Virus record (IMG/VR): IMGVR_UViG_3300024999_000030
Span: 1 to 64,000 of that record
Strand: one strand, 5' to 3'
DNA length: 64,000 bases
The position numbers and the translations under genes are program-made. Below, piece after piece: positions 7,251 to 30,907 of this stretch. The notes under the pieces were generated by a model that was not told the DNA's origin, did no database searches, and saw only the letters and a list, made by a program, of their open reading frames with translations. The stretch's first letter is position 1. Every line of letters starts with the position of its first letter.

Positions 7251-7284
7251 AGGGGGCCGGAGAAATCCGGCCCCCTTGATTTTT
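7251..7284 (+). terminator. Rho-independent terminator after MCP
   Basis: AGGGGGCCGG/CCGGCCCCCT stem plus T-rich tail. Confidence 0.75.
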
Positions 7285-7339
7285 GTCTATTAATGTATTA
7301 TATTTACAGTGTAAACCTAAAGACATGAAGGAGAGTAAG

Positions 7340-8281
7340 ATGGCGACTATGGGAGTATATGCAATTAAAAATAAAGTGAATGGTAAAATATATATAGGTT
7401 CCTCAAATGACCTTCATCGACGCAAGCTGGTCCATTTTAGGGAATTAACTAATAATAAACATTGCAATCGTTGGTTACAAAAAAGTTTTATCAAACATGG
7501 GATGGATAATTTTGAGTTTGAAATTATTGAAGAGGTTCAAGATGAATTAAAATTGATTGAGCGAGAGCAGTATTGGTTAGATTTTCACAAATCATATCAA
7601 TCTCGAAATGGTTATAATATTTGTAAAGTAGCTGGAGGAACAGACGGCATTACGTATACAGAAGAGTCCAAACAGAAAATTTCGGAATCCAGATTGGGTT
7701 GTCCTGGCACTGGTAAAAATACAAAAGGGGACCCAAATAATTTTAAAGCCAAAACATATTGTTTTAAAGACCAAGATGGAAATAACATCGAAATTAAAAA
7801 TCTAGAAGAATATTGTAGACAACATAGTCTCGATGAATCTCATATGAGAAAAGTCTTTTATGGTCGAGCTAAAACTCATGCGGGTTATTCTCTACCAGAC
7901 TATAATCCTCCTCCAGTTAAAGAATACGATTTCAAGGACCCGCAGGGGAATATTCATCACGTAGTTGGGAATCTCAAGAAATGGTGCAGAGAAAACAATC
8001 TTCGATACAGTTCTGTTCAGTATCTAGTCTCTGGCAAAGTCTACCAAGTCCAAGGCTGGTCCCGCCCCCTTACCGAGCTGAAGTCAGCTTATTACAAAAT
8101 CCAACATCCAGACAATAGTATTTCAGAAACCAATAACCTTGCAGAGTTTTGTAGGCAAAATAATTTGGACGGAGGCGCCATGGCTTTAGTTGTTCAAGGC
8201 AAACTCAAACAGCATAAAGGATTTAAGGTTTTAGAATCTTATGTTCCGCCTAATAAATCTCGGCGTAAGAATGTTAATTAA
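7340..8281 (+). CDS. GIY-YIG homing endonuclease with repeated C-terminal DNA-binding modules
   Basis: GVYAIKNKVNGKIYIGSS, R and ELKLIEREQ motifs; three repeats of the Y.F.D..G.......NL..(W/Y/F)CR...L module. Confidence 0.85.
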   Translation: MATMGVYAIKNKVNGKIYIGSSNDLHRRKLVHFRELTNNKHCNRWLQKSFIKHGMDNFEFEIIEEVQDELKLIEREQYWLDFHKSYQSRNGYNICKVAGGTDGITYTEESKQKISESRLGCPGTGKNTKGDPNNFKAKTYCFKDQDGNNIEIKNLEEYCRQHSLDESHMRKVFYGRAKTHAGYSLPDYNPPPVKEYDFKDPQGNIHHVVGNLKKWCRENNLRYSSVQYLVSGKVYQVQGWSRPLTELKSAYYKIQHPDNSISETNNLAEFCRQNNLDGGAMALVVQGKLKQHKGFKVLESYVPPNKSRRKNVN

Positions 8282-8507
8282 CATGAGTCGTCGAGGCTTA
8301 AGAAATTGGGTATGGTTTAGCCGATATCGAACCGCAGTATTGGCCCCATGTTATATTTGTGGTTGGTTGCTCTCTTTTGATGAAGCCACATTGGATCATG
8401 TTGTGCCTAAATCCCTTGGGGGAAAAAACGAATTAAATAATTTAGAAATTTGTTGTGCGAAATGTAATCATAAAAAAGCTGACAGGCTTTTAAAAAATAA
8501 CGGTTGA
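8271..8507 (+). CDS. Small HNH endonuclease
   Basis: CYICG...TLDHVVPKSLGGKNELNNLEICCAKCNHKK. Confidence 0.8.
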   Translation: MLINMSRRGLRNWVWFSRYRTAVLAPCYICGWLLSFDEATLDHVVPKSLGGKNELNNLEICCAKCNHKKADRLLKNNG

Positions 8508-8582: not shown

Positions 8583-9716
8583 ATGGAGGGTGACCATAAG
8601 GTGAACGACGATTCGTCGCTAAAAAATAACTACTTCCCTGAAATTTCTATTGAAGACTGGAGCGATTGGAAGTGGCAATATCGTAATAGAATCAAGACAG
8701 TCTCAGGACTGTCTAAATTTTTACCTGTAGACTCTGAATTGTTTAAACGTAGCAACCATGAGCTTCACATGGCTATTACTCCTTATTACCTTAGTCTTAT
8801 TGATAAGAAAAATTATCACGATGATCCAATTTACAAACAGGCAGTACCATCATTAGAAGAATTTAATGATGCAGGGTTAATCGATCCTCTTCATGAATCT
8901 GAGCAGTCTCCAGTAGACGGCATCGTTCATCGCTATCCAGATCGTTGTTTGTTTATTAGTACATCTTGGTGTGCGATGTACTGTAGATTTTGTACGCGAA
9001 AAATTCAATGGGAACACGGCGAGATGCCTAAGTCTCGTCGTCAATTAGAGGCGATGCTGGACTACATTCGTAAGACACCAGCAATTAGAGATGTTATTCT
9101 ATCTGGTGGAGATCCATTATCTCTTCCAATGGATACCTTGGAATTTATTCTATCTTCTCTTCGGAGCATTTCTCATGTTGAGATTATTCGAATCGGAACG
9201 CGTTTTCCAGTAGTATTGCCCCAAAGAATAACAGAAGATTTAACAAACATATTAAAAAAATATAGACCATTATATATCAATACTCATTTTAATCATGTAA
9301 ATGAAATTACAATAGAATCTTCAGCTGCATGTGATAAATTACTTTGTGTTGGTATCCCCGTAAATAATCAATCTGTACTTTTACGTGGAGTTAATAATAC
9401 CACTCAGGACATGCTAAACCTTTGTCATGGTTTATTGAAAATTGGAGTTCGGCCCTATTATTTGTTTGCTTGTGATGCTGTCAAAGGGGCTGAGCATTTT
9501 AGAACTACAATAGAAACGGGTATAAATATTATTGCTGGTATGCGTGGTTTTACTTCTGGTTTAGCTATTCCTCAATTTGTAGTTGACACAGAGGGGGGTG
9601 GAAAGGTTCCAGTAAATCCACATTACGTTGCTCGTAATGAAAATAATGAAATTGTATTGTATAACTATGAAGGTAAAGCTTTTAAATATAAAAATCCAGA
9701 AAAAAACAATAATTGA
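8583..9716 (+). CDS. kamA: KamA-family radical SAM protein (lysine 2,3-aminomutase/EpmB-like)
   Basis: W.DW.WQ N-terminus, HRYPDR, CAMYCRFC (CxxxCxxC), SGGDPL, RIGTR, NQSVLLRGVN, GGGKVP. Confidence 0.9.
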   Translation: MEGDHKVNDDSSLKNNYFPEISIEDWSDWKWQYRNRIKTVSGLSKFLPVDSELFKRSNHELHMAITPYYLSLIDKKNYHDDPIYKQAVPSLEEFNDAGLIDPLHESEQSPVDGIVHRYPDRCLFISTSWCAMYCRFCTRKIQWEHGEMPKSRRQLEAMLDYIRKTPAIRDVILSGGDPLSLPMDTLEFILSSLRSISHVEIIRIGTRFPVVLPQRITEDLTNILKKYRPLYINTHFNHVNEITIESSAACDKLLCVGIPVNNQSVLLRGVNNTTQDMLNLCHGLLKIGVRPYYLFACDAVKGAEHFRTTIETGINIIAGMRGFTSGLAIPQFVVDTEGGGKVPVNPHYVARNENNEIVLYNYEGKAFKYKNPEKNNN

Positions 9717-10313: not shown

Positions 10314-10891
10314 TGTATGTAGAAATATCTCCTAGACAAACTGGTAAAACTACTAGACTTATAGCGGCTATTAAGGCTCATTTAGCAGCTCATCCGTCAA
10401 ATGAAGCTATACTGTATGCCGTTAATTATAATTATATTTATAATTCTATGCCTCTTGTGGATCAAGGCCGCATTAATCGTTTCAGTCGCTGTAGCTATGC
10501 CGGTCGCAATAAAATTAAACTATTTGTAGATGAATTCGATTACTTATTATCAATGGAAGATTTTAATGAAATTCGTTGTAGATATAATTTAAATAATTCA
10601 TATTGGAGCACAACACCAAGGTTTATAAGGAATTCAATTAAGAAAGACGATGATGTTTTATTATCTATCTTATTTCTTAATGGAGGAAAGTGGTTTAGTA
10701 TGAATAAGGCTAACGTTAGACATGTTTGGAGGAATCGTTTTTATCTTAAAACTATTTCAAAAGAAGTTATGAAAATAGAATATTTTGGTTACTGGTTTCC
10801 GCCGGGAATGCTTCCGGTGTTATCTAAAGATGTTTATAGTCCAGCCGGATTTATAGAACATTTTATTCCACCTAAATGGCTTGACTTTTGA
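10313..10891 (+). CDS. P-loop NTPase-like protein (terminase/helicase-like Walker motifs)
   Basis: SPRQTGKTT Walker A; LFVDEF Walker B-like. Confidence 0.55.
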   Translation: MYVEISPRQTGKTTRLIAAIKAHLAAHPSNEAILYAVNYNYIYNSMPLVDQGRINRFSRCSYAGRNKIKLFVDEFDYLLSMEDFNEIRCRYNLNNSYWSTTPRFIRNSIKKDDDVLLSILFLNGGKWFSMNKANVRHVWRNRFYLKTISKEVMKIEYFGYWFPPGMLPVLSKDVYSPAGFIEHFIPPKWLDF

Positions 10892-10909
10892 CTATTAATA
10901 TTTTATATT
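10881..10909 (+). promoter_or_regulatory. Promoter of tRNA operon 1
   Basis: TTGACT-N17-TATATT, with CTATTAAT inside the spacer. Confidence 0.85.
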
Positions 10910-10929
10910 ATTAATGAAAGAGAAATGAA

Positions 10930-10998
10930 ATGAATATAGTAAATAGTTCACTCCTGTTATCGTTGTCTAGTCTTCCTAGCGCCCGAGGGGTGTTCTAA
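10930..10998 (+). CDS. Attenuator leader peptide 1 (Leu/Ser-sensing) MNIVNSSLLLSLSSLPSARGVF
   Basis: 11 of codons 6-17 are Leu/Ser, using five different Leu and five different Ser codons; the 3' end is the antiterminator strand. Confidence 0.85.
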   Translation: MNIVNSSLLLSLSSLPSARGVF

Positions 10999-11023
10999 GT
11001 CTATCTCCCTTTAGACTTTTGAC

Positions 11024-11058
11024 AAGCCCCTCGGAAATCGGGGGGCTTTTGGTTTTTT
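11024..11058 (+). terminator. Attenuator terminator 1
   Basis: AAGCCCCTCGG-AAA-TCGGGGGGCTT plus U-tract; its 5' strand also pairs with CGAGGGG at 10984. Confidence 0.85.
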
Positions 11059-11060
11059 AT

Positions 11061-11147
11061 GCGGATATGGTGGAACTTGGTAGACACAGAAGTCTTAAAA
11101 ATTTCTGGCCCATGGCCGTCCCAGTTCAAATCTGGGTATCCGCACCA
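11061..11147 (+). tRNA. tRNA-Leu(TAA)
   Basis: Cloverleaf, loop CT-TAA-AA, long V-arm, encoded CCA. Confidence 0.92.
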
Positions 11148-11150
11148 AAT

Positions 11151-11237
11151 GCGGTGGTGATGTAATTGGTAGCCATGTCAGCCTTAGAAGCTGATGGAAG
11201 AAATTCCGTATCGGTTCGAGTCCGATTCACCGCACCA
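11151..11237 (+). tRNA. tRNA-Leu(TAG)
   Basis: TCAGC-CTTAGAA-GCTGA arm, long V-arm, CCA. Confidence 0.92.
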
Positions 11238-11280
11238 AAAAGGGGATACTGGACGAAGATTAAATATGGTAAATTATAAT

Positions 11281-11358
11281 GGGCCGGTGATGCAATTCGG
11301 TAGACATCAATCTCTCAAAAAGATTGTTTTAAGGTTTCGAACACCTTCCGGCCTACCA
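11281..11358 (+). tRNA. tRNA-Leu(CAA), short variable region
   Basis: CAATCT-CTCAAAA-AGATTG; only ~4 nt before T-stem; CCA. Confidence 0.85.
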
Positions 11359-11365
11359 AAATAAT

Positions 11366-11453
11366 GGAGGGTGGGGCCACTTGTCTAGTGGACACCGCCT
11401 TGAAAGCGGTTGAGACTTTAGGGTTTTCGGTTGAATTCCGACACCCTCCTCCA
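11366..11453 (+). tRNA. tRNA-Ser(TGA), 8/4 acceptor/T-stem type
   Basis: GGAGGGTG/CACCCTCC 8 bp, TCGG/CCGA 4 bp, 5 bp D-stem with 5 nt loop, U73. Confidence 0.8.
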
Positions 11454-11456
11454 AAT

Positions 11457-11544
11457 GGAAGATTGGCCGAGTGATTTAAGGCTCCGGTTTGCTAAACCGG
11501 CGAGTCGAAAGGCTCCAAAGGTTTGAATCCTTTATCTTCCGCCA
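11457..11544 (+). tRNA. tRNA-Ser(GCT), canonical 7/5
   Basis: CCGGT-TTGCTAA-ACCGG, long V-arm, G73-CCA. Confidence 0.92.
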
Positions 11545-11547
11545 AAC

Positions 11548-11635
11548 GGAGAGTGAATCGGTCGGGGACCGAACACGCTCGGAAAGCGTTGTGTATCCGC
11601 AAGGATATAGGAATCGTGCTCTTCGCTCTCCGCCA
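11548..11635 (+). tRNA. tRNA-Ser(GGA), 8/4 (or 9/3) type, C33
   Basis: GGAGAGTG(A)/(T)CGCTCTCC, long D-stem TCGGT/ACCGA, loop TC-GGA-AA, V-arm with GCAA loop. Confidence 0.78.
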
Positions 11636-11641
11636 ATTTAT

Positions 11642-11728
11642 GGGAAGTGATCTGAACCGTTGTTCAGCATCGTCTCGAAAACGAATGGGACCTTCGGGTT
11701 TAGGGTTGAACTCCTTCGCTTCCCGCCA
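11642..11728 (+). tRNA. tRNA-Ser(CGA), 8/4 (or 9/3) type
   Basis: GGGAAGTG(A)/(T)CGCTTCCC; 6 bp D-stem CTGAAC/GTTCAG with 4 nt loop; loop CT-CGA-AA. Confidence 0.8.
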
Positions 11729-11731
11729 AAC

Positions 11732-11763
11732 AAAAAAGCCCAGGTATAAATACCTGGGCTTTT
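11732..11763. terminator. Bidirectional terminator ending tRNA operon 1
   Basis: AAAAAAGCCCAGGTA-TAAA-TACCTGGGCTTTT between convergent units. Confidence 0.8.
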
Positions 11764-14707: not shown

Positions 14708-14783
14708 GTCCAGTTAGCTCAATTGGCTAGAGCAGTATTCTCTAAAAACACTGACATCCGTTCGATCCGGATACTGGACACCA
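14708..14783 (+). tRNA. Amber suppressor tRNA (CTA)
   Basis: 76 nt cloverleaf GTCCAGT/ACTGGAC; loop CT-CTA-AA; one A.C mismatch in anticodon stem; TTCGATC T-loop; CCA. Confidence 0.85.
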
Positions 14784-15567: not shown

Positions 15568-16173
15568 ATGAAGAAATTTATTTGCACAATGTTGGCAGCG
15601 GCTCTTGTGGGGCTCTCGGCCTTTGCGGCTGCACCTGAACGTAAGTATGAGCTAACTTTTGGGCCTGCTTATACTTGGTCTGAATCAGCTCATATGCAGA
15701 GTTTGAATGGTCTTTCGTCCGCAACTAATATTAAGCTTTCGTTTCAAGATGATATGGGTCTTTATGTCGGGTTTTTCTTGCCTATTAGCAAGAATTTAGG
15801 ATTTTATCCTGGCCTTACGGCAAATTGGGACGGAAAGTTTTGGAGAGATGGTCAGTCTTATAATCAAATTACCTTTAAGACTTATGCTCTTGATCTAGAC
15901 GCACGATACAATTTTAATTTTAACAGTGGCACTTTTTATTTGATGGGTGGACCTACTATCACTTTCCTTCCCGAAGGGCAGCGACTTTCCGCGAATGTGG
16001 GTGTTGGTCTTAACTTTAAGTTGTTTTCATCTGACGCGTTTCGTCTTACCTTTGAGGGTAAGTATCGCGTCAACCCTAGCACTTTTTCCTACACTGATGT
16101 TAAGGGTGGGGATTATGAGTCTGCTCGTCCTGAGACTTGGACGGCTTTTACTGGCTTGACTTTTAAGTTCTAA
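15568..16173 (+). CDS. Outer-membrane beta-barrel protein with signal peptide
   Basis: MKK + hydrophobic + AFA signal; alternating beta strands; C-terminal GLTFKF. Confidence 0.8.
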   Translation: MKKFICTMLAAALVGLSAFAAAPERKYELTFGPAYTWSESAHMQSLNGLSSATNIKLSFQDDMGLYVGFFLPISKNLGFYPGLTANWDGKFWRDGQSYNQITFKTYALDLDARYNFNFNSGTFYLMGGPTITFLPEGQRLSANVGVGLNFKLFSSDAFRLTFEGKYRVNPSTFSYTDVKGGDYESARPETWTAFTGLTFKF

Positions 16174-16184
16174 GGTTGTATATT
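16156..16184 (+). promoter_or_regulatory. Promoter of tRNA operon 2
   Basis: TTGACT-N17-TATATT overlapping the OMP gene end; TATTAAT at 16181. Confidence 0.85.
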
Positions 16185-16218
16185 AATATTTATTGTAATA
16201 AATAGAAAAGAGGAGAAA

Positions 16219-16308
16219 ATGCTTTCTACTTGGTCTCACATCGAATTTGCCGAACGCCATAACGTGATGTTTAATGATATCGCGGGCGTTGGGAGCATTT
16301 GTTTGTAA
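16219..16308 (+). CDS. Attenuator leader peptide 2 MLSTWSHIEFAERHNVMFNDIAGVGSICL
   Basis: AGGAG RBS; codons 5-22 contain all of W,H,I,E,F,A,N,V,M,D, matching the downstream tRNAs. Confidence 0.88.
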   Translation: MLSTWSHIEFAERHNVMFNDIAGVGSICL

Positions 16309-16373: not shown

Positions 16374-16451
16374 GTGACGGAACGCGAAGCGGACGAGCGG
16401 ACTGTCTGTGAAACAGTTGATTAGAGGTTTCGAGGACCTTCCGTCACACCA
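16374..16451 (+). tRNA. tRNA-His(GTG), A73, possible 8/4 fold
   Basis: ACTGT-CTGTGAA-ACAGT; GTGACGGA/TCCGTCAC can form 8 bp with AGGT/ACCT T-stem. Confidence 0.82.
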
Positions 16452-16456
16452 AATAT

Positions 16457-16532
16457 GCGTCTGTGGTGTAAAGCCTAAGCATGATGGACTCCAAACCCAT
16501 CGGATTCAGCTGGCAACTGAGCGGACGTGCCA
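16457..16532 (+). tRNA. tRNA-Trp(CCA)
   Basis: Loop CT-CCA-AA; atypical T-loop CTGGCAA; G73-CCA. Confidence 0.8.
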
Positions 16533-16538
16533 AAATAT

Positions 16539-16620
16539 TCAGGAGAGCGCATATGGGTTGCGACCTGGCTGTTAACCAGATGCGAAAGCACACAGAGTTC
16601 GATTCTCTGCTCCTGAGCCA
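16539..16620 (+). tRNA. tRNA-Asn(GTT) with extended variable arm
   Basis: Loop CT-GTT-AA; V-region TGC-GAAA-GCA hairpin. Confidence 0.85.
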
Positions 16621-16627
16621 AATATAT

Positions 16628-16705
16628 GCCCTGGTAGCTCAGGTGGTTTAGAGCAATCGCTTGATAAGCGATAGGTCGTAAGTTCAAGTCTTACTCGGGG
16701 CACCA
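16628..16705 (+). tRNA. tRNA-Ile(GAT)
   Basis: Canonical cloverleaf, ATCGC-TTGATAA-GCGAT. Confidence 0.93.
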
Positions 16706-16708
16706 AAT

Positions 16709-16783
16709 GCCGCTTTAGCTCAGATGTAGAGCGCTGGCCTGAAGAGCCAGGCGTCGGAGGCTCAAGATCTCCAGGCGGCACCA
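16709..16783 (+). tRNA. tRNA-Phe(GAA)
   Basis: CTGGC-CTGAAGA-GCCAG. Confidence 0.9.
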
Positions 16784-16791
16784 AAAATTGA

Positions 16792-16885
16792 TGCGGGGTA
16801 GACTAGCGGTTCAGTCACTTGGTTCATACCCAAGCCGCACGGTAGCCAATCCGTCAGGTGGGTTCGACTCCCATCCCCGCCACCA
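16792..16885 (+). tRNA. tRNA-Met(CAT), initiator-like, with ~23 nt variable arm
   Basis: 1.72 mismatch (T.C), A11-U24 pair, loop TT-CAT-AC, ACGG/CCGT hairpin in V-region. Confidence 0.78.
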
Positions 16886-16894
16886 AAAATTTAT

Positions 16895-16971
16895 ACCTTG
16901 GTCACCAAGACGGTAAGGTGTAGTCCTCATAAGACTATTATACGGCAGTTCGAGTCTGCCCCAAGGTACCA
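16895..16971 (+). tRNA. tRNA(CAT): elongator Met or Ile2
   Basis: TAGTC-CTCATAA-GACTA; identity not resolvable by eye. Confidence 0.8.
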
Positions 16972-16973
16972 CT

Positions 16974-17050
16974 GCCGTTAAAGAGGAAGGACACGACTCA
17001 CCTGCCTGTCACGCAGGGGAAAGCCAGTGGAAGTCTGGTTGGCGGCGCCA
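16974..17050 (+). tRNA. tRNA-Asp(GTC)
   Basis: CCTGC-CTGTCAC-GCAGG, G73-CCA. Confidence 0.87.
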
Positions 17051-17055
17051 CTTAT

Positions 17056-17176
17056 GGGTCTATCATCTAATAGGGCCATCCGTGATACTAGAGGTATTTA
17101 GTACATGCAAGGGCGAAAATTAAGATGCTCCCGCAGAAAGGGAGTCATGTGGGTGCAAGTCCCGACGGATCCACCA
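17056..17176 (+). ncRNA. tRNA-like RNA with ~45 nt D-loop insertion and non-canonical anticodon loop
   Basis: D-stem ATCT/AGAT encloses a long hairpin; CTCCC-GCAGAAA-GGGAG; imperfect T/acceptor stems; ends ACCA. Confidence 0.6.
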
Positions 17177-17183
17177 AGTTTAT

Positions 17184-17257
17184 GGGGTAATCGTTTAGTG
17201 CTAGGACGAACGGCTCTCTACCGTTAAACCGGAGTTGAATTCTCCGTTACCCTACCA
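17184..17257 (+). tRNA. tRNA-Glu(CTC)
   Basis: AACGG-CTCTCTA-CCGTT, CCA. Confidence 0.82.
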
Positions 17258-17259
17258 AT

Positions 17260-17338
17260 GGCGTAATCGAATAATATGGACTAATTCGCCAGGCCTTCAC
17301 CCTGGATGATACGGGTTCGATCCCCGTTTACGCTACCA
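17260..17338 (+). tRNA. tRNA-Glu(TTC), C33
   Basis: CCAGG-CCTTCAC-CCTGG; canonical T-loop; CCA. Confidence 0.75.
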
Positions 17339-17339
17339 A

Positions 17340-17368
17340 TTGACAATTCCTATTAATGGAATTATATT
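17340..17368 (+). promoter_or_regulatory. Internal promoter for Val/Ala tRNAs
   Basis: TTGACA-N17-TATATT with CTATTAAT in the spacer. Confidence 0.8.
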
Positions 17369-17387
17369 TATTTCTTAAAAGATTTAT

Positions 17388-17463
17388 GCGCCCTTGGCCT
17401 AGTGGCGAAGGCATCTGGTCTACACCCAGAATATCGGGAGTTCGAGTCTCTCAGGGCGCACCA
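17388..17463 (+). tRNA. tRNA-Val(TAC), C33
   Basis: TCTGG-TCTACAC-CCAGA. Confidence 0.85.
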
Positions 17464-17468
17464 ATTTT

Positions 17469-17542
17469 GGGCCGTGGAGTGTGACGCGAGCACGTTTCCC
17501 TTGCACGGAAATAGAGGGGTTGAACTCCCACACGGTCCACCA
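17469..17542 (+). tRNA. tRNA-Ala(TGC)
   Basis: TTTCC-CTTGCAC-GGAAA; G3.U70 present. Confidence 0.9.
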
Positions 17543-17662: not shown

Positions 17663-20600
17663 GTGTCTAGATTTCTAAATCGTGTGGCTTGGCCACCCCC
17701 ACCCCTATCTATTGAACATGGCGGAACCGGCGCCTCCACTCAACCTGGCGCCGCTAATAATATCTTACCCCCACAGGCTGGCCATAACGGTGACATACTT
17801 TTTACGGATGGTTCTAATGTATCCTGGATTTCCCCTGGTTCTGGAGGAATAGTTACCTCTGTTATAAACTCGGATAGTTCGTTAACTATTTACCCCACCA
17901 TTGGAGACGTTACAGCTAGTATTAATTTAGCCCACTCCAATGTTTGGTCCGCCTCTCAATCTATTGTTCTTGCAGATAGTTCTGCAGCTACTGATTTTTT
18001 AATTAATCCTGCAATTAAAACAAGTGGTAGTTTATTTAAATTACAGGTTAATGATGTAAATAAATTTGTTGTTGATTATGAAGGTAAAATCACATCTGCA
18101 ACATGGAATGGAACTACCATTGAGACCCTTTATGGTGGTACGGGACTTACATCATATTCCAAGGGAGATTTAATATATGCCTCTGCGATCAACACGCTAT
18201 CTCAATTAACTAGTGCGGGCCATTTAGAGGGGCAGGTGTTAAAATTAATAAATTCTGGTGGATCTTTACTCCCAGAATGGTCAACACATAAAGCTTCTGT
18301 GGGCGTGGTGTCTACTCCTTCTCCTAAGTACACTGAGAATTCTGATGGTACCATTACAGTAGATTGCTCCGCAGCGCCTGTGTCAGTAGCATTAAGATCC
18401 ACATCAGACTTCTCAACCCCGATTGTGAGTTACTCTTTAACTGGAAGCTATGGCCCATTCACAATTGTTCCCACGGCGAGGAACTATATATACATCGCCT
18501 ATAATGGTGGGTCTCCGGCTATTTTACATACTACAGATGTTAGTCTCATTAATGAATCTGACTCAACACCCTATATCACAGTGGGTAGAATTGATAAATC
18601 AGGCACGGCAAATATAACCGATGGAGGCGCTGGCACTATTTTAGTGACAGTTACTCCAGCCTTAACCCAGCATGGTTTAGTATCCACTTGGGATGAGGTA
18701 ACGATAGCAGGAGCTGTAGATCTCACATACAATGGAACTTTCACAGTTACCAGGATAGACGCCTATTCTTTTAAGATAACACCACCTTCAGGGTATACTG
18801 CTGATGATACTTGCACCTGGTCCAGCATCGAACTTGACGTATTGGATTGGGACGAGCCTGGCAGTGGTCTTCAAAATAAATTACATCGTAGGTTTGTAAA
18901 AACACAACGATTTGCTAGGGAATCTGGACTTGAATTATCTGAAGACACCGGTAGAGTCGTCGTAGTTCCTACAGGTGTTGCTTGGTATGGTGGCAAAGCC
19001 ATTACGATGGCCGCTACGAGATCTGACACAACTACCTCCCGAACTTACCAGTGGCATCACGTTGGGGGTGTCTGGACAAAAACAATTACCACACAATACA
19101 ACAACAGTCAATTTGATGACGGCACGGACACACAGTCGCTAAGTCCAGGAAGATTTGTAGCTAACTGGATTTACCGGGATGTCAGCGATACGGATAGATG
19201 TCTGCACATCATTTTAGGTCACGGCACAGGCACCGGACACACCGTACTAGAAACAATAGGTGAGGTAGCCCCCACTTCAGCGGAACTTCCACCTGAGATG
19301 AGTGTCACCGCGATGCTGCTTGGAAGGATAATCGCTCGCCAAGGATCAGAGACGGCTGAACAGATAGATAGCGTTTTTGATCTGATAGCCTATCCCTCTG
19401 AGCACATTGTCAAAACCGCTCTTGACACCGTTACAGGCTATGGTGTCGTGTCTGGAATGAGCCTTGCCTCCGATAATGAATCTTGGACTGATTTGGAGAT
19501 AGACGCAGCGGACAACACCAAAATCAAATCCACAGGAAGTACACCCAGAGCGTTCGCCGCAGGAGATATAGGGAAAATCATTACTGTCACCGCAGGAGTA
19601 GGCTTTACCACAGGAGCTTACACCATCACTGCTGGACCAGATCTCAATGGGTTTATGACTCTATCGGGAGCGGTGGGAATAGTTGGTTCGGTGAATGGCT
19701 CAGCCACTATTGCAGCTTTCAAAATCAACTCTGGAGCATATTACACCCCGTCTACTGGAGAAAGATATTACACCACAGAGACCAAAATTGCTCTTCCCAA
19801 TATCTTAACCCACCTCGTTACCTATGTAGCCCTGGATGTCGATGAGACCGTTATACAACATACGAGTCCTTTCACAGATGCTGAGCGCAGATCCCAATTG
19901 TTCTTGGGGGTTGTGGTTCACAGTAATCATATCTCTGTTAATGCGGTCAACAACCTTCCAGATGTTGGCCTCGCCGCACTTTCGCAATATAACGACTTGT
20001 TGGACGCGCTCAAAGGTTTCAATGACAGTGGGAACGATTTTGAGGCTAATGGTGCCAATTTACAAATCAATAAAACAGCCGGTACTCTTTTTAAGCGTGG
20101 TGTCAACTTCGCTAATGATACTACCACCCCTCATGTTATTACTACTGGAGCACTAACTGCCCCAGCTAATCTTCGTTTCCGAACTCAAACTGGTGTAGAG
20201 ACAGCAGATTTAAACTACATAGACAGCGGTTTCTATGATCTCGCTGGTGTGAGGACTGCGGTGTCTCCCGCAGGGCGTTTCCAGATAATGCGGATTGCTC
20301 TATTCCCCTCTAACTTAGTGCGCATCCAATATGGTCAGCAACTTTATGTGAAGATGTCGGATGCTTTCGCAGGTCTTGCAACTGAGCCCTTTGTAGTGGA
20401 ACAGAACATTAATGAGAATGGTCTCTTCAGAGCAATTCTAGTTGTACAAGGGAATGCGACAGCTCTAAATGATTCTACACAAGCCCAGTTTATTATGCTC
20501 AATCGTTTTGGGGACGTTCCTCAAGCTGCGGGAGTAACTGGTGGTGTAGATCTTCAGAGAGCCTATGAAAATTCCTTACCCAATCCTGAGATTCTCACAA

Positions 20601-23600
20601 ATCTCATTAACGGCGCTCTTAATATTCGCAGAGGAACAGCAGCGGATACCGACTCCGTGTGGACCGTGCAGAACAACGCAGGAGATAGTGTAGCGATATT
20701 CGATGCTAACGGTCTTCTCACTTTAGGTGCTGATTTAGCCACCAATGTTCCAGGCTCAATAAAGATGTGGGGGGCAGGAGCTAATTCTTGGTTTACCTCA
20801 TTTATTACTGGAACCCAAACGGCTAATGTTACATATACTTTACCCACAGCAATGCCAACACTAACGGGACAAGCTCTTGTATCTACGGACGCTGGAGTGA
20901 TGAGTTGGGCCACTGTTACAACTCCACCAGCAGGACTAGATACCTACATACAATATAATAATAGTGGAGTTTTTGGCGCTGAAGCAGAATTTACTTATAA
21001 TTATTCTACTAATCTTCTCGCTGTTGGTGAAACTTCTATTTCTTCTAATGTCATTACTATGTTGACATCGGATCCTAAAATTTTCTTACGACATGGTCAA
21101 GGCAATCTTAGTGTTTATTTTAGTGGCTTAGGCTTAAATGATCTTACCGCAAACGGCCCATATATAGGAGCCGAAGGAAGATTAAACACTTATGATTTTA
21201 TTATAGCTATTGACAGTGTCTCTGGTCCAGTGGACACTTTCCAGTGGACAAGTCCCACCAATATTCAGACTTTTGGTGTGGCAATTACTGGTGCCGCCCA
21301 GTACTTAACTGATGGAGTGTCAATTACTTTTGCTTCAACAACTGGACATACACTTGGAGAATATTGGACGATTATTGTAGATAATACTGATCTTTTTCAA
21401 TTAGTAAATGCCGCTGGAACTGTAGCTTTTAATGTGCAAAATGATGGCCGGATTGGTTCTAGTTTACTAAATGCCAGCGGCTTGCCTAGAATTCCTATTT
21501 TAGCTGAGCAAGGATTTGGTTTTACTTGTGCGGGAATGATTCCTGGTGGTGGTTTCCCTGAATATTTTTTATTCGCTACTGTTGGTGATGGCCTAGACAC
21601 AACGCCAGTTTTTAGACTTATGGCCCCGACGAGTTTATCTGATGGCACGCTTATAGACTCTACTTGGTGGACACCAACGGGCGTTCATTTTGCTAATGAT
21701 ATATATTATTCACCTGCTGGTCCGTGGGGCGTAGGAGGAAACACTCCTAAACCCTATGCTACGCAATTTTGGGTGACTTCGCAGGGGTATTTAACTGGCG
21801 CAGGTGGATCAGATACATATGTACAATATAATGCTTCAGGGGTATTAACTGGTGATTCTGGCCTCACTTACCAAGCAGGTACCAGTGATTTGTATGTGGC
21901 CGGATCAATCAGCATAGCAACTTCTGCTGTAATGACACCCAATGTGGCCGATGGAGCTTTGGCAGTAGCTTATTTGTTTGATTCTCTTACTGAATTAACT
22001 AATGCCGCAGGGGCAAAGAACCTTGTCGTAGCTAATGGCACGGTAGAAAAATTTAGTGTCAATCCTCGTCAAACGGTATTAAATACTGAATTAGTTATCC
22101 ATCCTCCTACCTCCACAACAGAGATCTTTGCGGCTCCCTTTTATAATATAGACTCACGAGATTCTAGCGATGTGTCGCGTTTCAAAGTAGATTCCGATGG
22201 CAACGTTACCATGTCCTATGACATAGCCATAGGACCAACCACGTTACTATTAGATGCCCCGCCAGCTAATGGTTTAATTGTCGACACAGATGCTTGGTCT
22301 CCAATTATAGAATTTGAATCCAAATTAGGCGATCAAAGTGCTGTTATGGAATTTGAATCTAAAGTAGGAATGCAAAGTTCGGTAACTGAATTAGAAACTG
22401 CATCCACTAGAACAGTTGTTGTTGGAAGAGATCGAGTTAGATACAATTATGATTATTCAAATAAGATATACACTACTGATAGCACCGATGCTAAAATATA
22501 TGCTACTAATGGAACTATAGCAAAAGTGCAAAGTCAATCTGCACCTAGTAATTCATTACATTTTCTTATAGATAACACGTATGACACACTGATAGATGGA
22601 ACGGGTTATTGGTGGGCAGGTGGGTATCGGGATATTGGTGGTGGACTTGGCAATCCAGGCTTTGTTGTTGACACAACAGCTATAACTTGGTGGGCCGGCA
22701 CAATCTATAATTATATGGATTCTAGTGGTGTTTGGACAACCAACGATGCTGAAACCACATACGCTTGGTTAGATCCAGCGCAGGGACTAAATCTTTATTC
22801 AGATACAATGACTCTTTTAATGGGAGCCACAACTCCATATTTGAAGTTTAATCCTGGAGTAGCCTCTTCTGGTACATCTATTGCTTACTTATTTGACACA
22901 GTAAATAATCTTAATACACCAGGTGATAGACTAGTATCAATACAAAATCAAACGGTAGAAAAATTTAGTATATCAGATACAGATGTGACTAGTTTAGTAC
23001 TTTTCACAGCACCAGATGTATTTGTTGGTGACCTTAATCGCTCAGATGTCACTTATTTTTCAGATCTCAAGATGGCCACTGGTGTGCCCTTCAGCGAACG
23101 CCAGAAGTTTAAAATAGCTGTCACTTATAGTGGTGGAAATGTTACAGCCACTATTTCTTTTGTGGGTGCTTATACAGATTTCAGTTACTATATCAGCGGT
23201 AAGAAGTTTACAGTTACTAGCACTGAATTAGCTGCTTATACAGCCACGACGGCTTCGGCAGAAGGTGTGTGGTTCTTTTATATCAATAATACAACGGTAG
23301 ATGTCGCCGCCCCCGTTATGATTCTCTCTCTCACTCCATGGGTGATTTATGATCCAGATGTTCTGTTGTGGGATTTCTATTTCAACGCATCTGATAATAG
23401 TATTACTTGGGTGGGTGAAGAGCGCCATACGGCAGGCCGAGACATTTTCAATCACGCCAGAAATCATGCTCAAGGTGCACAGTATAAAAATGGATTATTG
23501 ATTAACCACTATAATAATCTGACCACACTTTCTGCAAACACAGATGATAACTTCGGTAGAGCATTAGTGGGAGTATCGAATGGTAGTTTCTATGATGAAG

Positions 23601-25243
23601 ATATTTTCGATTCCATCGCTCATGCGGACACTGCATATACATCTACAGTAGCTGCCCCGGCCACCAACTGGAATCTCATCGTATCTCAATTCTTAGGTTT
23701 TACAGATACAAACAGTTCAGTGGTAGCCGGAACCCTTACCTTTCCCGCTTCTCATACTTTAGTCACAGGACAACCGCTTACAGTGTTTCAGGGTAACACT
23801 ACCACTGTTCGTGGAACGTTTACTGTAACTCTTGGAGGTACTGGTGCCTCATTCTCCGTAACTACAGTTACTGGATCTAACGCTTTTGCTAATAATGATG
23901 TGGTAGTTGTGGGTAGTCGCATTCCCATCTACTATATTTCCTCAGTGGCGGGATCCACATACACTTGGAGGAAGTTAGCCACCACGGAGTTCTTAGGTGT
24001 CTCGGGTGGTGCGGCTTACACTACAGCAAACATAGCTTCCGGCGCAGCACAATATAATGACCCCTCTGTTGGTGGATGGCTCGGAATAACTGCCAATAGG
24101 TACTATCCAGTCTATCTCGCGGCGACCAATAGCACTTCTGAACCAGTCATTGCCATTATGGGCCAGTCATCCTCCACAAGCTCTATTCTAACTACTGTGT
24201 TGACAGAGAACGCATGGAATTATTCGAGTTTAGTGGGCTTGGCTGGTCTTAGTATTCAAGAGGTCGTGCCTTTTTACAGATTGACCTTTTACTATAACAC
24301 CACCGGACTTTTTTCAAACACTCGCATTAAATTAGTGGACGCTATGTTCATCAATATCCGCGTTTCCACTGTTAGCGGTTCAATAGTCGCTCCTGCCTCG
24401 ATCTCTAACCACGCATTACTTACCAACTTAGAATACCCCACATCGGAACACACCTACTTCTTGGGGCAAGATGCGACGTGGACGGCGCCCGTTGTGGGAC
24501 AGATTCCATACGCCTATGATGTGACCGCTCCCACTAAGCCTTTATTCTTAGGTAGTTCTGATTTCATGTGGGCCACAGAGTTGTCGATTACTAAGAACAA
24601 TATCACCACTACATCCACTGACGCCCTCCGATTGAAGAACACTACAGTATCTTTAGTAGGAACTCAAGTACAGCAATCTCCCAATTTAATGTTTGAAAAT
24701 CATGTTTGGGATTTGGATGGGGCAGTAGATGATAAGTGGGAGTGGTTTGTCTACACTAAGGGAACCGCAACTAATATCACAACTAATACAATGTACTTCG
24801 ATGTTAGTAAGAATGATGCAGCAGCTACCACTCCCGCATCTCTCACCTCTGATGGTGCTCTCTATATTAGTAAAGTCATCGGCCCAGTATTTGAGAAAAC
24901 CTTTGGATTTGATGGCGTTCTAGTCACATTCACAGGGGCCCGCAGATGGTATCCGTCAACGGCAATTACAGTAATATCATGCACTGCCTCTGTCAACACA
25001 GCTCCTACTGGTGCCACTGTTTTAGTGGATGTTGATAAAAATATCAATGATGGAGGCGCCACTATATTTACCACTCAAGCTAATAGACCAGAGATAGCGA
25101 TAAGTGGATACGTATCCGCAGCAGAAGTACCAGATATAACATCATTCTTATCTTCAGATTATATGACAGTGGACGTGGATCAGATAGGCTCTACAATAGC
25201 AGGATCTGATATCACCGTCACTATTAGATACACTTATGCGTAA
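17663..25243 (+). CDS. Very large tail fibre/receptor-binding protein (2526 aa)
   Basis: G/T/S-rich beta repeats, repeated GSDTY(I/V)QYN.SG and (I/V)AYLFD...L modules, fibre-type C-terminal domain; AGGAG RBS and CTATTAAT upstream. Confidence 0.75.
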   Translation: MSRFLNRVAWPPPPLSIEHGGTGASTQPGAANNILPPQAGHNGDILFTDGSNVSWISPGSGGIVTSVINSDSSLTIYPTIGDVTASINLAHSNVWSASQSIVLADSSAATDFLINPAIKTSGSLFKLQVNDVNKFVVDYEGKITSATWNGTTIETLYGGTGLTSYSKGDLIYASAINTLSQLTSAGHLEGQVLKLINSGGSLLPEWSTHKASVGVVSTPSPKYTENSDGTITVDCSAAPVSVALRSTSDFSTPIVSYSLTGSYGPFTIVPTARNYIYIAYNGGSPAILHTTDVSLINESDSTPYITVGRIDKSGTANITDGGAGTILVTVTPALTQHGLVSTWDEVTIAGAVDLTYNGTFTVTRIDAYSFKITPPSGYTADDTCTWSSIELDVLDWDEPGSGLQNKLHRRFVKTQRFARESGLELSEDTGRVVVVPTGVAWYGGKAITMAATRSDTTTSRTYQWHHVGGVWTKTITTQYNNSQFDDGTDTQSLSPGRFVANWIYRDVSDTDRCLHIILGHGTGTGHTVLETIGEVAPTSAELPPEMSVTAMLLGRIIARQGSETAEQIDSVFDLIAYPSEHIVKTALDTVTGYGVVSGMSLASDNESWTDLEIDAADNTKIKSTGSTPRAFAAGDIGKIITVTAGVGFTTGAYTITAGPDLNGFMTLSGAVGIVGSVNGSATIAAFKINSGAYYTPSTGERYYTTETKIALPNILTHLVTYVALDVDETVIQHTSPFTDAERRSQLFLGVVVHSNHISVNAVNNLPDVGLAALSQYNDLLDALKGFNDSGNDFEANGANLQINKTAGTLFKRGVNFANDTTTPHVITTGALTAPANLRFRTQTGVETADLNYIDSGFYDLAGVRTAVSPAGRFQIMRIALFPSNLVRIQYGQQLYVKMSDAFAGLATEPFVVEQNINENGLFRAILVVQGNATALNDSTQAQFIMLNRFGDVPQAAGVTGGVDLQRAYENSLPNPEILTNLINGALNIRRGTAADTDSVWTVQNNAGDSVAIFDANGLLTLGADLATNVPGSIKMWGAGANSWFTSFITGTQTANVTYTLPTAMPTLTGQALVSTDAGVMSWATVTTPPAGLDTYIQYNNSGVFGAEAEFTYNYSTNLLAVGETSISSNVITMLTSDPKIFLRHGQGNLSVYFSGLGLNDLTANGPYIGAEGRLNTYDFIIAIDSVSGPVDTFQWTSPTNIQTFGVAITGAAQYLTDGVSITFASTTGHTLGEYWTIIVDNTDLFQLVNAAGTVAFNVQNDGRIGSSLLNASGLPRIPILAEQGFGFTCAGMIPGGGFPEYFLFATVGDGLDTTPVFRLMAPTSLSDGTLIDSTWWTPTGVHFANDIYYSPAGPWGVGGNTPKPYATQFWVTSQGYLTGAGGSDTYVQYNASGVLTGDSGLTYQAGTSDLYVAGSISIATSAVMTPNVADGALAVAYLFDSLTELTNAAGAKNLVVANGTVEKFSVNPRQTVLNTELVIHPPTSTTEIFAAPFYNIDSRDSSDVSRFKVDSDGNVTMSYDIAIGPTTLLLDAPPANGLIVDTDAWSPIIEFESKLGDQSAVMEFESKVGMQSSVTELETASTRTVVVGRDRVRYNYDYSNKIYTTDSTDAKIYATNGTIAKVQSQSAPSNSLHFLIDNTYDTLIDGTGYWWAGGYRDIGGGLGNPGFVVDTTAITWWAGTIYNYMDSSGVWTTNDAETTYAWLDPAQGLNLYSDTMTLLMGATTPYLKFNPGVASSGTSIAYLFDTVNNLNTPGDRLVSIQNQTVEKFSISDTDVTSLVLFTAPDVFVGDLNRSDVTYFSDLKMATGVPFSERQKFKIAVTYSGGNVTATISFVGAYTDFSYYISGKKFTVTSTELAAYTATTASAEGVWFFYINNTTVDVAAPVMILSLTPWVIYDPDVLLWDFYFNASDNSITWVGEERHTAGRDIFNHARNHAQGAQYKNGLLINHYNNLTTLSANTDDNFGRALVGVSNGSFYDEDIFDSIAHADTAYTSTVAAPATNWNLIVSQFLGFTDTNSSVVAGTLTFPASHTLVTGQPLTVFQGNTTTVRGTFTVTLGGTGASFSVTTVTGSNAFANNDVVVVGSRIPIYYISSVAGSTYTWRKLATTEFLGVSGGAAYTTANIASGAAQYNDPSVGGWLGITANRYYPVYLAATNSTSEPVIAIMGQSSSTSSILTTVLTENAWNYSSLVGLAGLSIQEVVPFYRLTFYYNTTGLFSNTRIKLVDAMFINIRVSTVSGSIVAPASISNHALLTNLEYPTSEHTYFLGQDATWTAPVVGQIPYAYDVTAPTKPLFLGSSDFMWATELSITKNNITTTSTDALRLKNTTVSLVGTQVQQSPNLMFENHVWDLDGAVDDKWEWFVYTKGTATNITTNTMYFDVSKNDAAATTPASLTSDGALYISKVIGPVFEKTFGFDGVLVTFTGARRWYPSTAITVISCTASVNTAPTGATVLVDVDKNINDGGATIFTTQANRPEIAISGYVSAAEVPDITSFLSSDYMTVDVDQIGSTIAGSDITVTIRYTYA

Positions 25244-28835: not shown

Positions 28836-30221
28836 ATGAAAACTAATAAGAAAACTCATACTGTTGTTCATACCGCTGAAGGCGCCGTTGCAGCTAATAT
28901 TAACGCCAAGCAACAGCTCCGTAGGTCCGTTATGAGCTGCCTCCTTTGGGAGGATTCCTTCTATGAGGAAGGTGTGTCCATTGCTAAGCGTATTACCGAT
29001 TTAGTTAAAAAGGTTGATCCTGAAGATGTAGCTTCGCTCGCTATTGAAGCTCGTGAGGATTTCAAGCTTCGCCATGTTCCATTGCTCTTAGTTCGTGAGC
29101 TTGCTCGTGTGCATAAGGGAGATTCGCTTGTTTCTGATACTTTGGCACGAGTAATTCAGCGTCCAGATGAAATGGGTGAATTTGTAAGCCTTTATTGGAA
29201 AGAGGGAAGACAGCCTTTGTCTATGCAGGTTAGAAAGGGTATTGCTAAGGCCATGGGTAAGTTTAATGAATACTCCTTAGCTAAATATAATTCTTCTAAA
29301 TCTAATATTAAGCTTCGTGATATTCTCCGTTTGGTTCATCCTTCTCCAGTTGGTGATGAACAGACTCGTTTATGGAAGCGTATTTTAACCGATGAATTGG
29401 CTACTCCCGATACTTGGGAAGTTGCTTTGTCTGCTGGTAAGGATAAAAAGGAAACTTGGACTCGCCTTATTGATGAAAATAAGCTTGGTGGATTAGCTTT
29501 TTTACGTAATCTTCGTAACATGGAAACAGCTAAAGTAGATAAGGATATTGTACGTAGGGGCTTTGACCAAATTAATGTTTCTAGGGTTCTGCCTTTCCGT
29601 TTCCTTTCGGCTGCAAATGCTGCTCCTAAGTTTGAAGTTGAACTTGAGAAAGTAATGCTTAAGAGTTTTGAGGGTCGTGAAAAACTTCCTGGCAAGACAT
29701 TGTTTATTGTAGACGTGTCTGGAAGTATGGGCGGTTCGTTATCTCATAAGAGTGAAATGAATCGTCATGATGCAGCGGCAGCTCTTGCCATCGTTGCTCG
29801 TGAGATGTGTGAAGACCCAGTTATTTATGCTACAGCAGGAAACGATATGACTCGCATTCACAAAACTTCTATCGTTCCAGCTCGTCATGGGTTTGCCCTT
29901 AAGGATGCTATTCGTACTCAAGCTAACCAACTTGGTGGTGGAGGCATCTTTCTTAAGCAAGTTATGGACTATGTAAAGAACGCAGAGGGTGAGGCCGATA
30001 GAATTATCGTCATCACTGACGAGCAGGATTGCGACATCAAGCATAAGCCATCTACGGCTCAGCCATTCGGTAGGTATAATTATATGCTTAACGTTTCAGT
30101 AGAGAAGAACGGTATCGGCTACGGGCAGTGGACTCACATCGACGGTTTCTCTGAGGCTGTATTAGATTTCATTCTTCTTAGTGAGAAGGAAAACGAGCAG
30201 GAGATATGTCAGACTAACTAA
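28836..30221 (+). CDS. rsr: Ro60/Rsr TROVE-vWA RNA-binding protein
   Basis: L+R.VMSCLLWE..FYE, AREDFKLRHVPL, PDTWEV.LS, LRNLRNM, VDVSGSM MIDAS, ITDEQ. Confidence 0.92.
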   Translation: MKTNKKTHTVVHTAEGAVAANINAKQQLRRSVMSCLLWEDSFYEEGVSIAKRITDLVKKVDPEDVASLAIEAREDFKLRHVPLLLVRELARVHKGDSLVSDTLARVIQRPDEMGEFVSLYWKEGRQPLSMQVRKGIAKAMGKFNEYSLAKYNSSKSNIKLRDILRLVHPSPVGDEQTRLWKRILTDELATPDTWEVALSAGKDKKETWTRLIDENKLGGLAFLRNLRNMETAKVDKDIVRRGFDQINVSRVLPFRFLSAANAAPKFEVELEKVMLKSFEGREKLPGKTLFIVDVSGSMGGSLSHKSEMNRHDAAAALAIVAREMCEDPVIYATAGNDMTRIHKTSIVPARHGFALKDAIRTQANQLGGGGIFLKQVMDYVKNAEGEADRIIVITDEQDCDIKHKPSTAQPFGRYNYMLNVSVEKNGIGYGQWTHIDGFSEAVLDFILLSEKENEQEICQTN

Positions 30222-30243
30222 GACTGTCACTTGCTCGGTATTT

Positions 30244-30276
30244 AAGGCCCCGGGTAAGTTTTCCCGGGGCTTTTTT
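30244..30276 (+). terminator. Terminator after Ro60
   Basis: GCCCCGGG/CCCGGGGC plus TTTTTT. Confidence 0.85.
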
Positions 30277-30280
30277 ACTT

Positions 30281-30374
30281 GCGGGAGTCGTCCAGCGGCC
30301 AGGACAGCGGTCTTATAAGCCGCCTCGCTCCAGATTAGAGCAAAACGGGGGTTCGAGTCCCTCCTCCCGCACCA
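30281..30374 (+). tRNA. tRNA-Ile(TAT) with ~23 nt variable arm
   Basis: GCGGT-CTTATAA-GCCGC; GCTC/GAGC hairpin in V-region; CCA. Confidence 0.82.
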
Positions 30375-30428
30375 AATACGGCCCTCCGATTCTATATCAA
30401 TACTCAACCATAGAATCGGAGGGCCATT

Positions 30429-30731
30429 ATGTCTACTAAGAAACCAGGTCCAGGCACTTTCCCAATGTGGGAAAACAGGATTGTCATTAAGAGGAAGATT
30501 TTTTGTTGGACATGGAATGTCTCAATTCCAGGCGCAACTGATACAGTTTTCTCTCAATTCGCTCTAGCTATGAAGGCTCTTGAGGACCATGGATATAAAG
30601 TATATGATATAGACACTTTTCCGTATCGCAAGGATGAAATTGGTCAAGTTACTGTGGTCGGAACGTTTAAAGTGAAGCGTCATTTTCTTTGGAGAGGCGA
30701 AATCCTAGCGACATATGTTGGGGAGGGCTGA
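30429..30731 (+). CDS. Hypothetical protein; RBS sequestered in a 16 bp hairpin
   Basis: 100 aa ORF; GGAGGG inside inverted repeat 30380-30425. Confidence 0.6.
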   Translation: MSTKKPGPGTFPMWENRIVIKRKIFCWTWNVSIPGATDTVFSQFALAMKALEDHGYKVYDIDTFPYRKDEIGQVTVVGTFKVKRHFLWRGEILATYVGEG

Positions 30732-30743
30732 ATTTAATTTGAC

Positions 30744-30772
30744 TTGACTTTCTTCTATTAATATATTATATT
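30744..30772 (+). promoter_or_regulatory. Promoter of tRNA operon 3
   Basis: TTGACT-N17-TATATT with CTATTAAT in the spacer. Confidence 0.85.
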
Positions 30773-30787
30773 ATTTGAGAGAGGACG

Positions 30788-30883
30788 ATGAATATGTTTA
30801 CCCAAGGAACCCCTAAACCACAGACAAGAACATACCAACGCTATTGCGGTAGGTATGTGCAAAATTTGGGGGCTTTGTCCTAA
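30788..30883 (+). CDS. Attenuator leader peptide 3 MNMFTQGTPKPQTRTYQRYCGRYVQNLGALS
   Basis: GAGG RBS; codons 5-23 consist only of T,Q,G,P,K,R,Y,C, matching the downstream tRNAs. Confidence 0.9.
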   Translation: MNMFTQGTPKPQTRTYQRYCGRYVQNLGALS

Positions 30884-30907
30884 GTATCTGTATCGCGGTT
30901 CAAAGAC

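Follow-up and report, generated by a model that had tools for sequence, protein, structure and literature searches.

Predicted leader-peptide attenuators in front of the tRNA operons of a huge groundwater phage

In the leader-peptide attenuators of amino acid biosynthetic operons of Enterobacteria (trp, his, leu, thr, pheA and the multivalent ilvGMEDA and ilvBN) a promoter-proximal short open reading frame carries a block of regulatory codons, and an intrinsic terminator lies before the first structural gene. The antiterminator (helix 2:3) and the terminator (helix 3:4) are mutually exclusive, and region 2 is located at the end of the ORF. The ilv and thr leaders respond to several amino acids at once. 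A component of the translation apparatus can apparently be controlled in this way as well, since the pheM leader of E. coli seems to regulate pheST, which encodes phenylalanyl-tRNA synthetase; there the target is a synthetase gene on a bacterial chromosome and a single amino acid is involved. T-box riboswitches also report the state of a particular tRNA through a terminator/antiterminator switch and control translation-related genes, but they bind the tRNA directly through a specifier codon and the T-box bulge and have no translated ORF. The reason why phages carry tRNA genes is a long-standing question, and the usual answers are codon-usage compensation, replacement of decaying host tRNA or escape from tRNA-cleaving defences. 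We found no description of leader peptides or attenuators upstream of phage tRNA genes in full-text literature searches, although these did not cover most subscription journals and an older report cannot be excluded.

The window analysed here comprises the first 64 kb (64,000 nucleotides) of the 332.7-kb viral contig IMGVR_UViG_3300024999_000030. The same sequence occurs in a groundwater metagenome assembly of project PRJNA268031. An earlier note, made from the sequence alone, had proposed that a Leu/Ser leader at 10930-11058 forms an attenuator in front of Leu and Ser tRNA genes. The sequence reads as the note described, and every structural element that it named is present. Moreover, the unit is one of three with the same order of promoter, short ORF, a spacer of about 25 nt, terminator and tRNA array. 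The features of the three units, A, B and C, are as follows:

10881-10909, plus strand: promoter of unit A, TTGACT-17 nt-TATATT
10930-10998, plus strand: leader ORF A, ATG at 10930, 22 codons plus TAA (10996-10998), with a partial Shine-Dalgarno sequence, AAGAG, at 10918-10922, 7 nt before the ATG
10945-10980, plus strand: regulatory core of leader A, codons 6-17, with 5 Leu, 6 Ser and 1 Pro codon, containing region 1 (CACTCCT, 10949-10955)
10983-10994, plus strand: region 2, the 5' strand of the antiterminator, in the last codons of the leader and ending 1 nt before the stop codon
10997-11018, plus strand: inner hairpin AAGTCTA (10997-11003)/TAGACTT (11012-11018), nested inside the antiterminator helix
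11021-11058, plus strand: region 3/4, intrinsic terminator with stem 11024-11033/11039-11048, loop GAAAT and tail TTGGTTTTTT; its 5' arm also pairs with region 2
11061-11728, plus strand: tRNA array A, Leu(TAA), Leu(TAG), Leu(CAA), Ser(TGA), Ser(GCT) and two divergent class-II tRNA-like genes read as Ser(GGA) (11548-11635) and Ser(CGA) (11642-11728)
11734-11763: bidirectional terminator that closes array A
16156-16184, plus strand: promoter of unit B, TTGACT-17-TATATT
16219-16308, plus strand: leader ORF B, 29 codons plus TAA, with the Shine-Dalgarno sequence GAGGAG at 16210-16215, core codons 5-22 and an antiterminator strand (16290-16306) that overlaps the stop codon
16327-16370, plus strand: region 3 and terminator of unit B, stem 16333-16344/16349-16360
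16374-17542, plus strand: tRNA array B, His, Trp-like (16457-16535), Asn, Ile, Phe, Met, Met, Asp, an unassigned tRNA-like element (17057-17177), Glu, Glu, an internal promoter (17340-17368), Val and Ala
30739-30772, plus strand: promoter of unit C, two overlapping TTGACT-17-TATATT matches
30788-30883, plus strand: leader ORF C, 31 codons plus TAA, with a Shine-Dalgarno sequence within 30777-30785 (GAGAGAGGA), core codons 5-23, region 1 at 30810-30817 and region 2 at 30866-30879
30905-30940, plus strand: region 3 and terminator of unit C, stem 30908-30917/30922-30931
30949-33549, plus strand: tRNA array C, Lys(TTT), Lys(CTT), Pro, an ORF (31227-31925), Arg(ACG), Tyr, Gln(TTG), Thr(TGT), Cys, Gln(CTG), Gly(GCC), an HNH ORF ending at 33223, Gly(TCC) twice, Arg(TCT) and Thr(CGT)

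Codons 6-17 of leader A are AGT TCA CTC CTG TTA TCG TTG TCT AGT CTT CCT AGC, i.e. five of the six Leu codons and five of the six Ser codons, of which only AGT is repeated, plus one Pro codon. The promoter belongs to a sigma-70 type that is repeated at least ten times in the window; the same hexamers occur at 9713, 12239, 12610, 15503, 16156, 28443, 30739/30744 and 33628. Only 12 nt separate the terminator stem from the first tRNA gene, which leaves no room for a separate promoter, so the tRNAs can only be made by reading through the hairpin. In array A, Leu(TAA), Leu(TAG), Leu(CAA) and Ser(GCT) were called by ARAGORN, and Ser(TGA) was supported by ARAGORN with relaxed settings and by an Rfam tRNA-clan hit. 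The two genes read as Ser(GGA) and Ser(CGA), which end in CCA, rest on reading by eye and on folding only, since no tRNA tool called either of them as such on this strand. The Trp-like gene of array B was likewise read by eye.

In leader A, 11 of 12 core codons are Leu or Ser; in leader B, 16 of 18 core codons belong to the set of array B and all 10 amino acids of the array are present; in leader C, 19 of 19 core codons are in the set and all 8 amino acids are present. The off-set codons are Pro in A and Ser and Arg in B. The three amino acid sets ({L,S}, {H,W,N,I,F,M,D,E,V,A} and {K,P,R,Y,Q,T,C,G}) do not overlap and together make up all 20 amino acids. Among the 982 ORFs of 15-60 codons in the six frames of the window, each leader was the best match to the set of its own array, with scores of 25.1, 11.9 and 23.9 bits for A, B and C against next-best scores of 15.0, 10.9 and 14.9 bits. 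Random 30-mers reached these scores in 0, 204 and 0 of 200,000 trials. Two other tRNA genes in the window, the suppressor tRNA at 14708 and tRNA-Ile(TAT) at 30281, have no leader ORF of this type.

In each unit the last codons of the leader are complementary to the 5' arm of the terminator. In unit A the pairing involves CGAGGGG (10984-10990) and CCCCTCG (11027-11033), and the antiterminator (10983-10994 with 11021-11034) encloses the inner hairpin that the earlier note had recognised. The 2:3 helices of A, B and C have energies of -29.1, -28.9 and -22.3 kcal/mol (z -6.1, -6.4 and -3.6 against dinucleotide shuffles) and the 3:4 helices -18.2, -22.2 and -20.1 kcal/mol (z -4.3, -6.2 and -5.6). 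A 1:2 helix, which in the classical systems gives termination when the leader is not translated, is better supported in B and C (z -3.4 and -2.0) than in A, where the pairing of 10949-10955 with 10986-10992 is weak (-11.5 kcal/mol, z -1.1). Region 2 ends 0-2 nt before the stop codon, and the stop codon lies about 25 nt before the terminator stem in all three units. A ribosome paused at the stop codon would therefore cover region 2 but not the terminator.

To examine this geometry we modelled the nascent transcript up to the terminator loop with a 27-nt ribosome mask. The 5' arm of the terminator stayed sequestered while the A site was at codons up to 15 (A), 22 (B) or 23 (C) and was released once the ribosome entered the last 7-8 codons. 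This boundary coincides with the end of the regulatory core in all three units; in other words the regulatory codons occupy exactly the positions where a stall would favour read-through. Without a ribosome the nascent RNA preferred the antiterminator, so that the element may be "on" by default and depend on tight coupling of transcription and translation. Equilibrium folding of the complete leaders with a ribosome mask separated the two states only for unit A, in which the pair probability of the terminator was about 0 for stalls at codons 5-10 and above 0.9 from codon 12. The full-length leaders of B and C always folded the terminator at equilibrium. The switch must therefore be kinetic, as in the trp operon, which cannot be shown by folding.

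The earlier note had suggested that sampling nearly every synonymous codon suits sensing the loss of any single isoacceptor, and this idea has moderate support. The presence of 11 distinct codons among the 12 of leader A has P=0.004 under synonymous recoding with the codon usage of the phage, and the leader includes the rarest Leu and Ser codons of the phage (CTG, CTC, TCG, AGC). All seven isoacceptors of array A have a decodable codon in the leader (P=0.07). Over the three units 30 of 33 tRNAs have a decodable codon in their own leader against 26.4 expected (P=0.057), but the codon-level signal is not significant for B or C alone. The contrast which the note drew with codon-repeating biosynthetic attenuators is not a rule, however, because leaders of this type in other phages do repeat codons (see below).

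No relative of the phage itself was found, and hence the helices of unit A have no covariation support of their own. Searches of GenBank phages by DNA in near and distant modes gave only isolated tRNA hits, and searches of IMG/VR with three flanking proteins gave only the same phage. The 192-aa upstream protein found only itself, in 25 contigs, in a set of 5.8 billion proteins; the groundwater contig retrieved was identical over 5.6 kb. A Ro60-like gene has many relatives in IMG/VR, but none with a syntenic array. We therefore sampled phage tRNA arrays at random from IMG/VR with a three-fold T-arm pattern and scored the best small ORF in the 400 nt upstream against the amino acid set of each array. 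Among 165 non-redundant clusters of other phages 9 reached a corrected p<0.01 and 5 reached p<0.001, whereas antisense ORFs gave 0 and 0 and sets shuffled among clusters gave 1.45 and 0.2. In a second census, anchored on terminators, we found 50 ORFs ending 8-50 nt before a terminator that lies at most 150 nt before a tRNA. Eighteen of these scored at least 10 bits, against 1.6 expected.

The design is not confined to the phage described here but recurs in unrelated phages. In L129, a 424-kb contig, a leader with a core of Phe, Glu and Ala codons precedes Glu, Ala and Phe tRNAs, and other leaders in the same contig match Asn/Pro/Thr/Tyr and Asp/Arg/Lys/Gly arrays. In L134 a run of 19 Asn/Ile/Val/Cys/Thr codons precedes exactly those tRNAs, in L150 a Glu/Tyr leader precedes Glu and Tyr tRNAs, and in L133 a 16-codon core lists all eight amino acids of its array. 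L134 is a relative of the published uncultured huge-phage genomes LR745206.1 and LR756502.1 (62% and 59% protein identity). In these two genomes leaders with runs of six and seven Gln codons precede three and four tRNA-Gln genes; the run of seven before four tRNA-Gln genes (L293) is from LR756502.1. In each example checked the 3' end of the leader pairs with the 5' arm of the terminator, and the distance from stop codon to stem is about 22-35 nt, typically 22-29 nt. Three homologous units (L068, L106 and L090) share terminator sequence, C-terminal tail and first tRNA, yet their cores differ in step with their tRNA sets: Cys appears only where tRNA-Cys is present, and Ile is written ATA where the array carries tRNA-Ile(TAT). 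Leader content also covaries with tRNA content in L134, L292 and L293. Since the leader sequences are not conserved but track the tRNA sets, we rejected the possibility that they are micropeptide genes. Over 19 units, 219 of 257 in-set degenerate codons are readable by the anticodons of the same operon under strict wobble, against 200.2 expected (P=0.0002).

A like sample of 72 bacterial and archaeal tRNA clusters gave nothing convincing. Phage T5 has many small ORFs among its tRNAs, but in the region examined none matches the tRNAs that follow, and a Cys-rich ORF before tRNA-Cys looks like a zinc ribbon. Aeromonas phage AerS_266 has only three tRNAs in the stretch retrieved, and no cultured relative of L129, L134 or L068 was found. 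The leader of unit A could not be assigned to any curated RNA family. At gathering score Rfam found only tRNAs in the window, and in a permissive scan of 10880-11065 the best scores were 28.2 for rnk_pseudo (cut-off 55), 14.8 for Phe_leader (cut-off 55) and 13.9 for His_leader (cut-off 49); Thr_leader, Leu_leader and other leader families did not reach their cut-offs either. The T-box family RF00230 gave no hit at gathering score in the window and none at E up to 5 in 10880-11065. The element is not a T-box.

The explanation we consider quite likely, although it is inferred from the sequence without expression data and the Shine-Dalgarno sequence of leader A is only partial, is that these elements are ribosome-mediated transcription attenuators which gate phage tRNA operons. 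If every Leu and Ser codon of leader A is decoded promptly, the ribosome would follow RNA polymerase to the stop codon and cover region 2, so that the terminator hairpin forms and the tRNA genes are not transcribed. If any one cognate tRNA is scarce, the ribosome would stall inside the core, leaving region 2 free to pair with region 3, and polymerase would read into the array. Units B and C would do the same for 10 and 8 other amino acids. Because the sensed molecules are of the same kinds as the products, the circuit would work as product feedback and should be self-limiting, and each leader would act as an OR gate over its group of tRNAs. Possible causes of a shortage are codon-usage mismatch with the host, decay of host tRNA during infection or cleavage by host anticodon nucleases. 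In contrast to the biosynthetic attenuators mentioned above, the regulated genes are tRNAs rather than enzymes, up to ten amino acids are listed in one leader, the element is viral, and leader A spreads over nearly all synonymous codons instead of repeating one.

It might be argued that an attenuator of the same build reports amino acid starvation, as the biosynthetic attenuators do, and that the match to the downstream tRNAs is a by-product of grouping. A stalled ribosome cannot distinguish a missing tRNA from an uncharged one, as is established for the trp, his, leu and ilv attenuators, and the match at the amino acid level is much stronger than that at the codon level. On the other hand, making more tRNA does not relieve amino acid starvation, so this logic would bring no benefit, and the preference for codons read by the operon's own anticodons, the ATA codons in front of tRNA-Ile(TAT) and the rare codons of leader A speak against it. 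We regard this alternative as unlikely. Two others appear very doubtful. The hairpin might be a constitutive or leaky terminator that merely insulates the array from upstream transcription, or an RNA-processing or stability element, with a short ORF that is not translated or has no regulatory role. Arrangements of promoter, small ORF and terminator are common in phage early regions, our promoter and terminator scans rely on consensus matches only, and the small ORFs of T5 show no visible codon match. However, this view does not explain why each ORF is the best match in 64 kb to its own tRNA set, why the ORF ends are complementary to the terminator arms, why the core ends where a ribosome would begin to mask region 2, or why unrelated phages repeat the pattern far above shuffled controls. 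Finally the logic could be inverted, with efficient translation of the leader needed for read-through, for example by blocking Rho or melting the terminator, so that the array is made only when translation is healthy. Translation-dependent antitermination exists (tna operon, Rho polarity), and since the model favours the antiterminator without a ribosome it is the off state that needs explaining. But the stop codon lies too far from the terminator stem for a terminating ribosome to melt it, while the same ribosome covers region 2 exactly; the regulatory codons lie upstream of region 2 as in classical attenuators, and the terminators are intrinsic, with T tracts.

A wider interpretation, which we put forward only tentatively, is that phages with large tRNA sets carry a widespread class of decoding-capacity sensors. 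The virus would measure in real time which host tRNAs are failing, whether from codon mismatch, host shut-off or anticodon-nuclease defence, and switch on only the matching replacement set. Phage tRNA arrays would then be an inducible counter-defence and homeostatic system rather than constitutive cargo. If the leaders do stall on the codons served by the downstream tRNAs, the conditions that trigger stalling would reveal the selective reason for carrying tRNA genes. The compact parts could also be used to report the supply of individual tRNAs in cells. It is also interesting to note that the leaders give an independent read-out of operon boundaries and of the identity of divergent tRNA-like genes that tRNA finders miss, one example being the Trp codon in leader B and the Trp-like gene at 16457-16535.

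A highly uniform promoter motif, TTGAC(T/A)-17 nt-TATATT, is repeated before most of the short gene blocks of this region, with copies at 9713, 10881, 12239, 12610, 14366, 15503, 16156, 17340, 28443, 30739 and 33628, all on the + strand. It looks like the early promoter class of the phage and suggests a host with a standard sigma-70-type polymerase. At the start of leader A a three-codon mini-ORF (ATG AAA TGA, 10925-10933) overlaps the start codon of the leader out of frame, in an ATGA-type overlap, and may influence initiation on the leader.

Many of the tRNAs of the phage (30949-31038, 32103-32280, 32375-32462, 16792-16885 and 33301-33379) are oddly long. Lys (90 nt), Gln (86 and 88 nt) and Thr (86 nt) have long variable arms like class-II tRNAs, one Met is 94 nt and one Gly(TCC) appears to have a 9-nt anticodon loop. 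A 120-nt tRNA-like element lies inside array B (17057-17177) and is called neither by ARAGORN nor by Rfam. It has a 6-bp acceptor stem, a T-arm-like hairpin and an encoded ACCA end. A 5-bp stem carries the 7-nt loop GCAGAAA (central triplet AGA, with C at position 33), and about 65 nt are inserted where the D arm should be. Leader B has two TCT (Ser) codons that lie outside the amino acid set of its array, and these would be read by an AGA anticodon. The Ser(GGA)-like gene of array A also has C at position 33.

An amber-suppressor-type tRNA (anticodon CTA; 14708-14783) was labelled 'Pyl' by ARAGORN and scored 55.5 bits as Rfam tRNA. It is located after an ORF of roughly 73 codons and has no leader or terminator of the attenuator type. 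A similar CTA tRNA heads a Gly/Ala array in L150, and a TTA 'stop' tRNA lies in L090, both of these being sequences of other phages sampled for their tRNA arrays. This hints at stop codon reassignment in these phages.

Another tRNA-like gene lies after a Ro60/TROVE-vWA protein gene (Pfam TROVE 6.9e-23; phrog_850 'RNA-binding protein') in the region 28836-30430. The protein gene ends at 30221 and is followed, in this order, by:
30244-30273, a terminator-like hairpin
30281-30374, a 94-nt tRNA-Ile(TAT)-like gene with an insertion
30381-30427, a perfect 16-bp hairpin
Because bacterial Ro60 partners with Y RNAs that have tRNA-like domains, this may be a phage Ro60 with a Y-RNA-like partner. Several IMG/VR relatives of the protein also have a single tRNA-like gene or a tmRNA next to it.

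Among the protein-coding genes of the region, 8583-9716 encodes a radical-SAM protein with a lysine-2,3-aminomutase C-terminal domain (Pfam LAM_C 3.5e-15, Radical_SAM 7.1e-11). It is of the EpmB/YjeK type that modifies elongation factor P in bacteria, which would be another translation-related gene next to the tRNA units. Directly after array B there is an ORF of 2526 codons (17663-25243) that has no Pfam hit, and its first 600 residues have no relative in IMG/VR other than the same phage.

HNH-type endonuclease-like ORFs sit inside tRNA array C at 31227-31925 and 32495-33223, although only the second gave a Pfam HNH match, which was weak, and the first gave none. According to precomputed Pfam annotation, GIY-YIG and HNH genes also lie upstream of unit A (7283-8507). 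Phage T5 shows the same habit of homing endonuclease genes among its tRNAs. The small T5 ORF just upstream of tRNA-Cys (NC_005859, about 34,627-34,773; our locus L170) is Cys-rich, with paired CxxC motifs; it looks like a zinc-ribbon protein rather than a leader, but the coincidence may be of interest.
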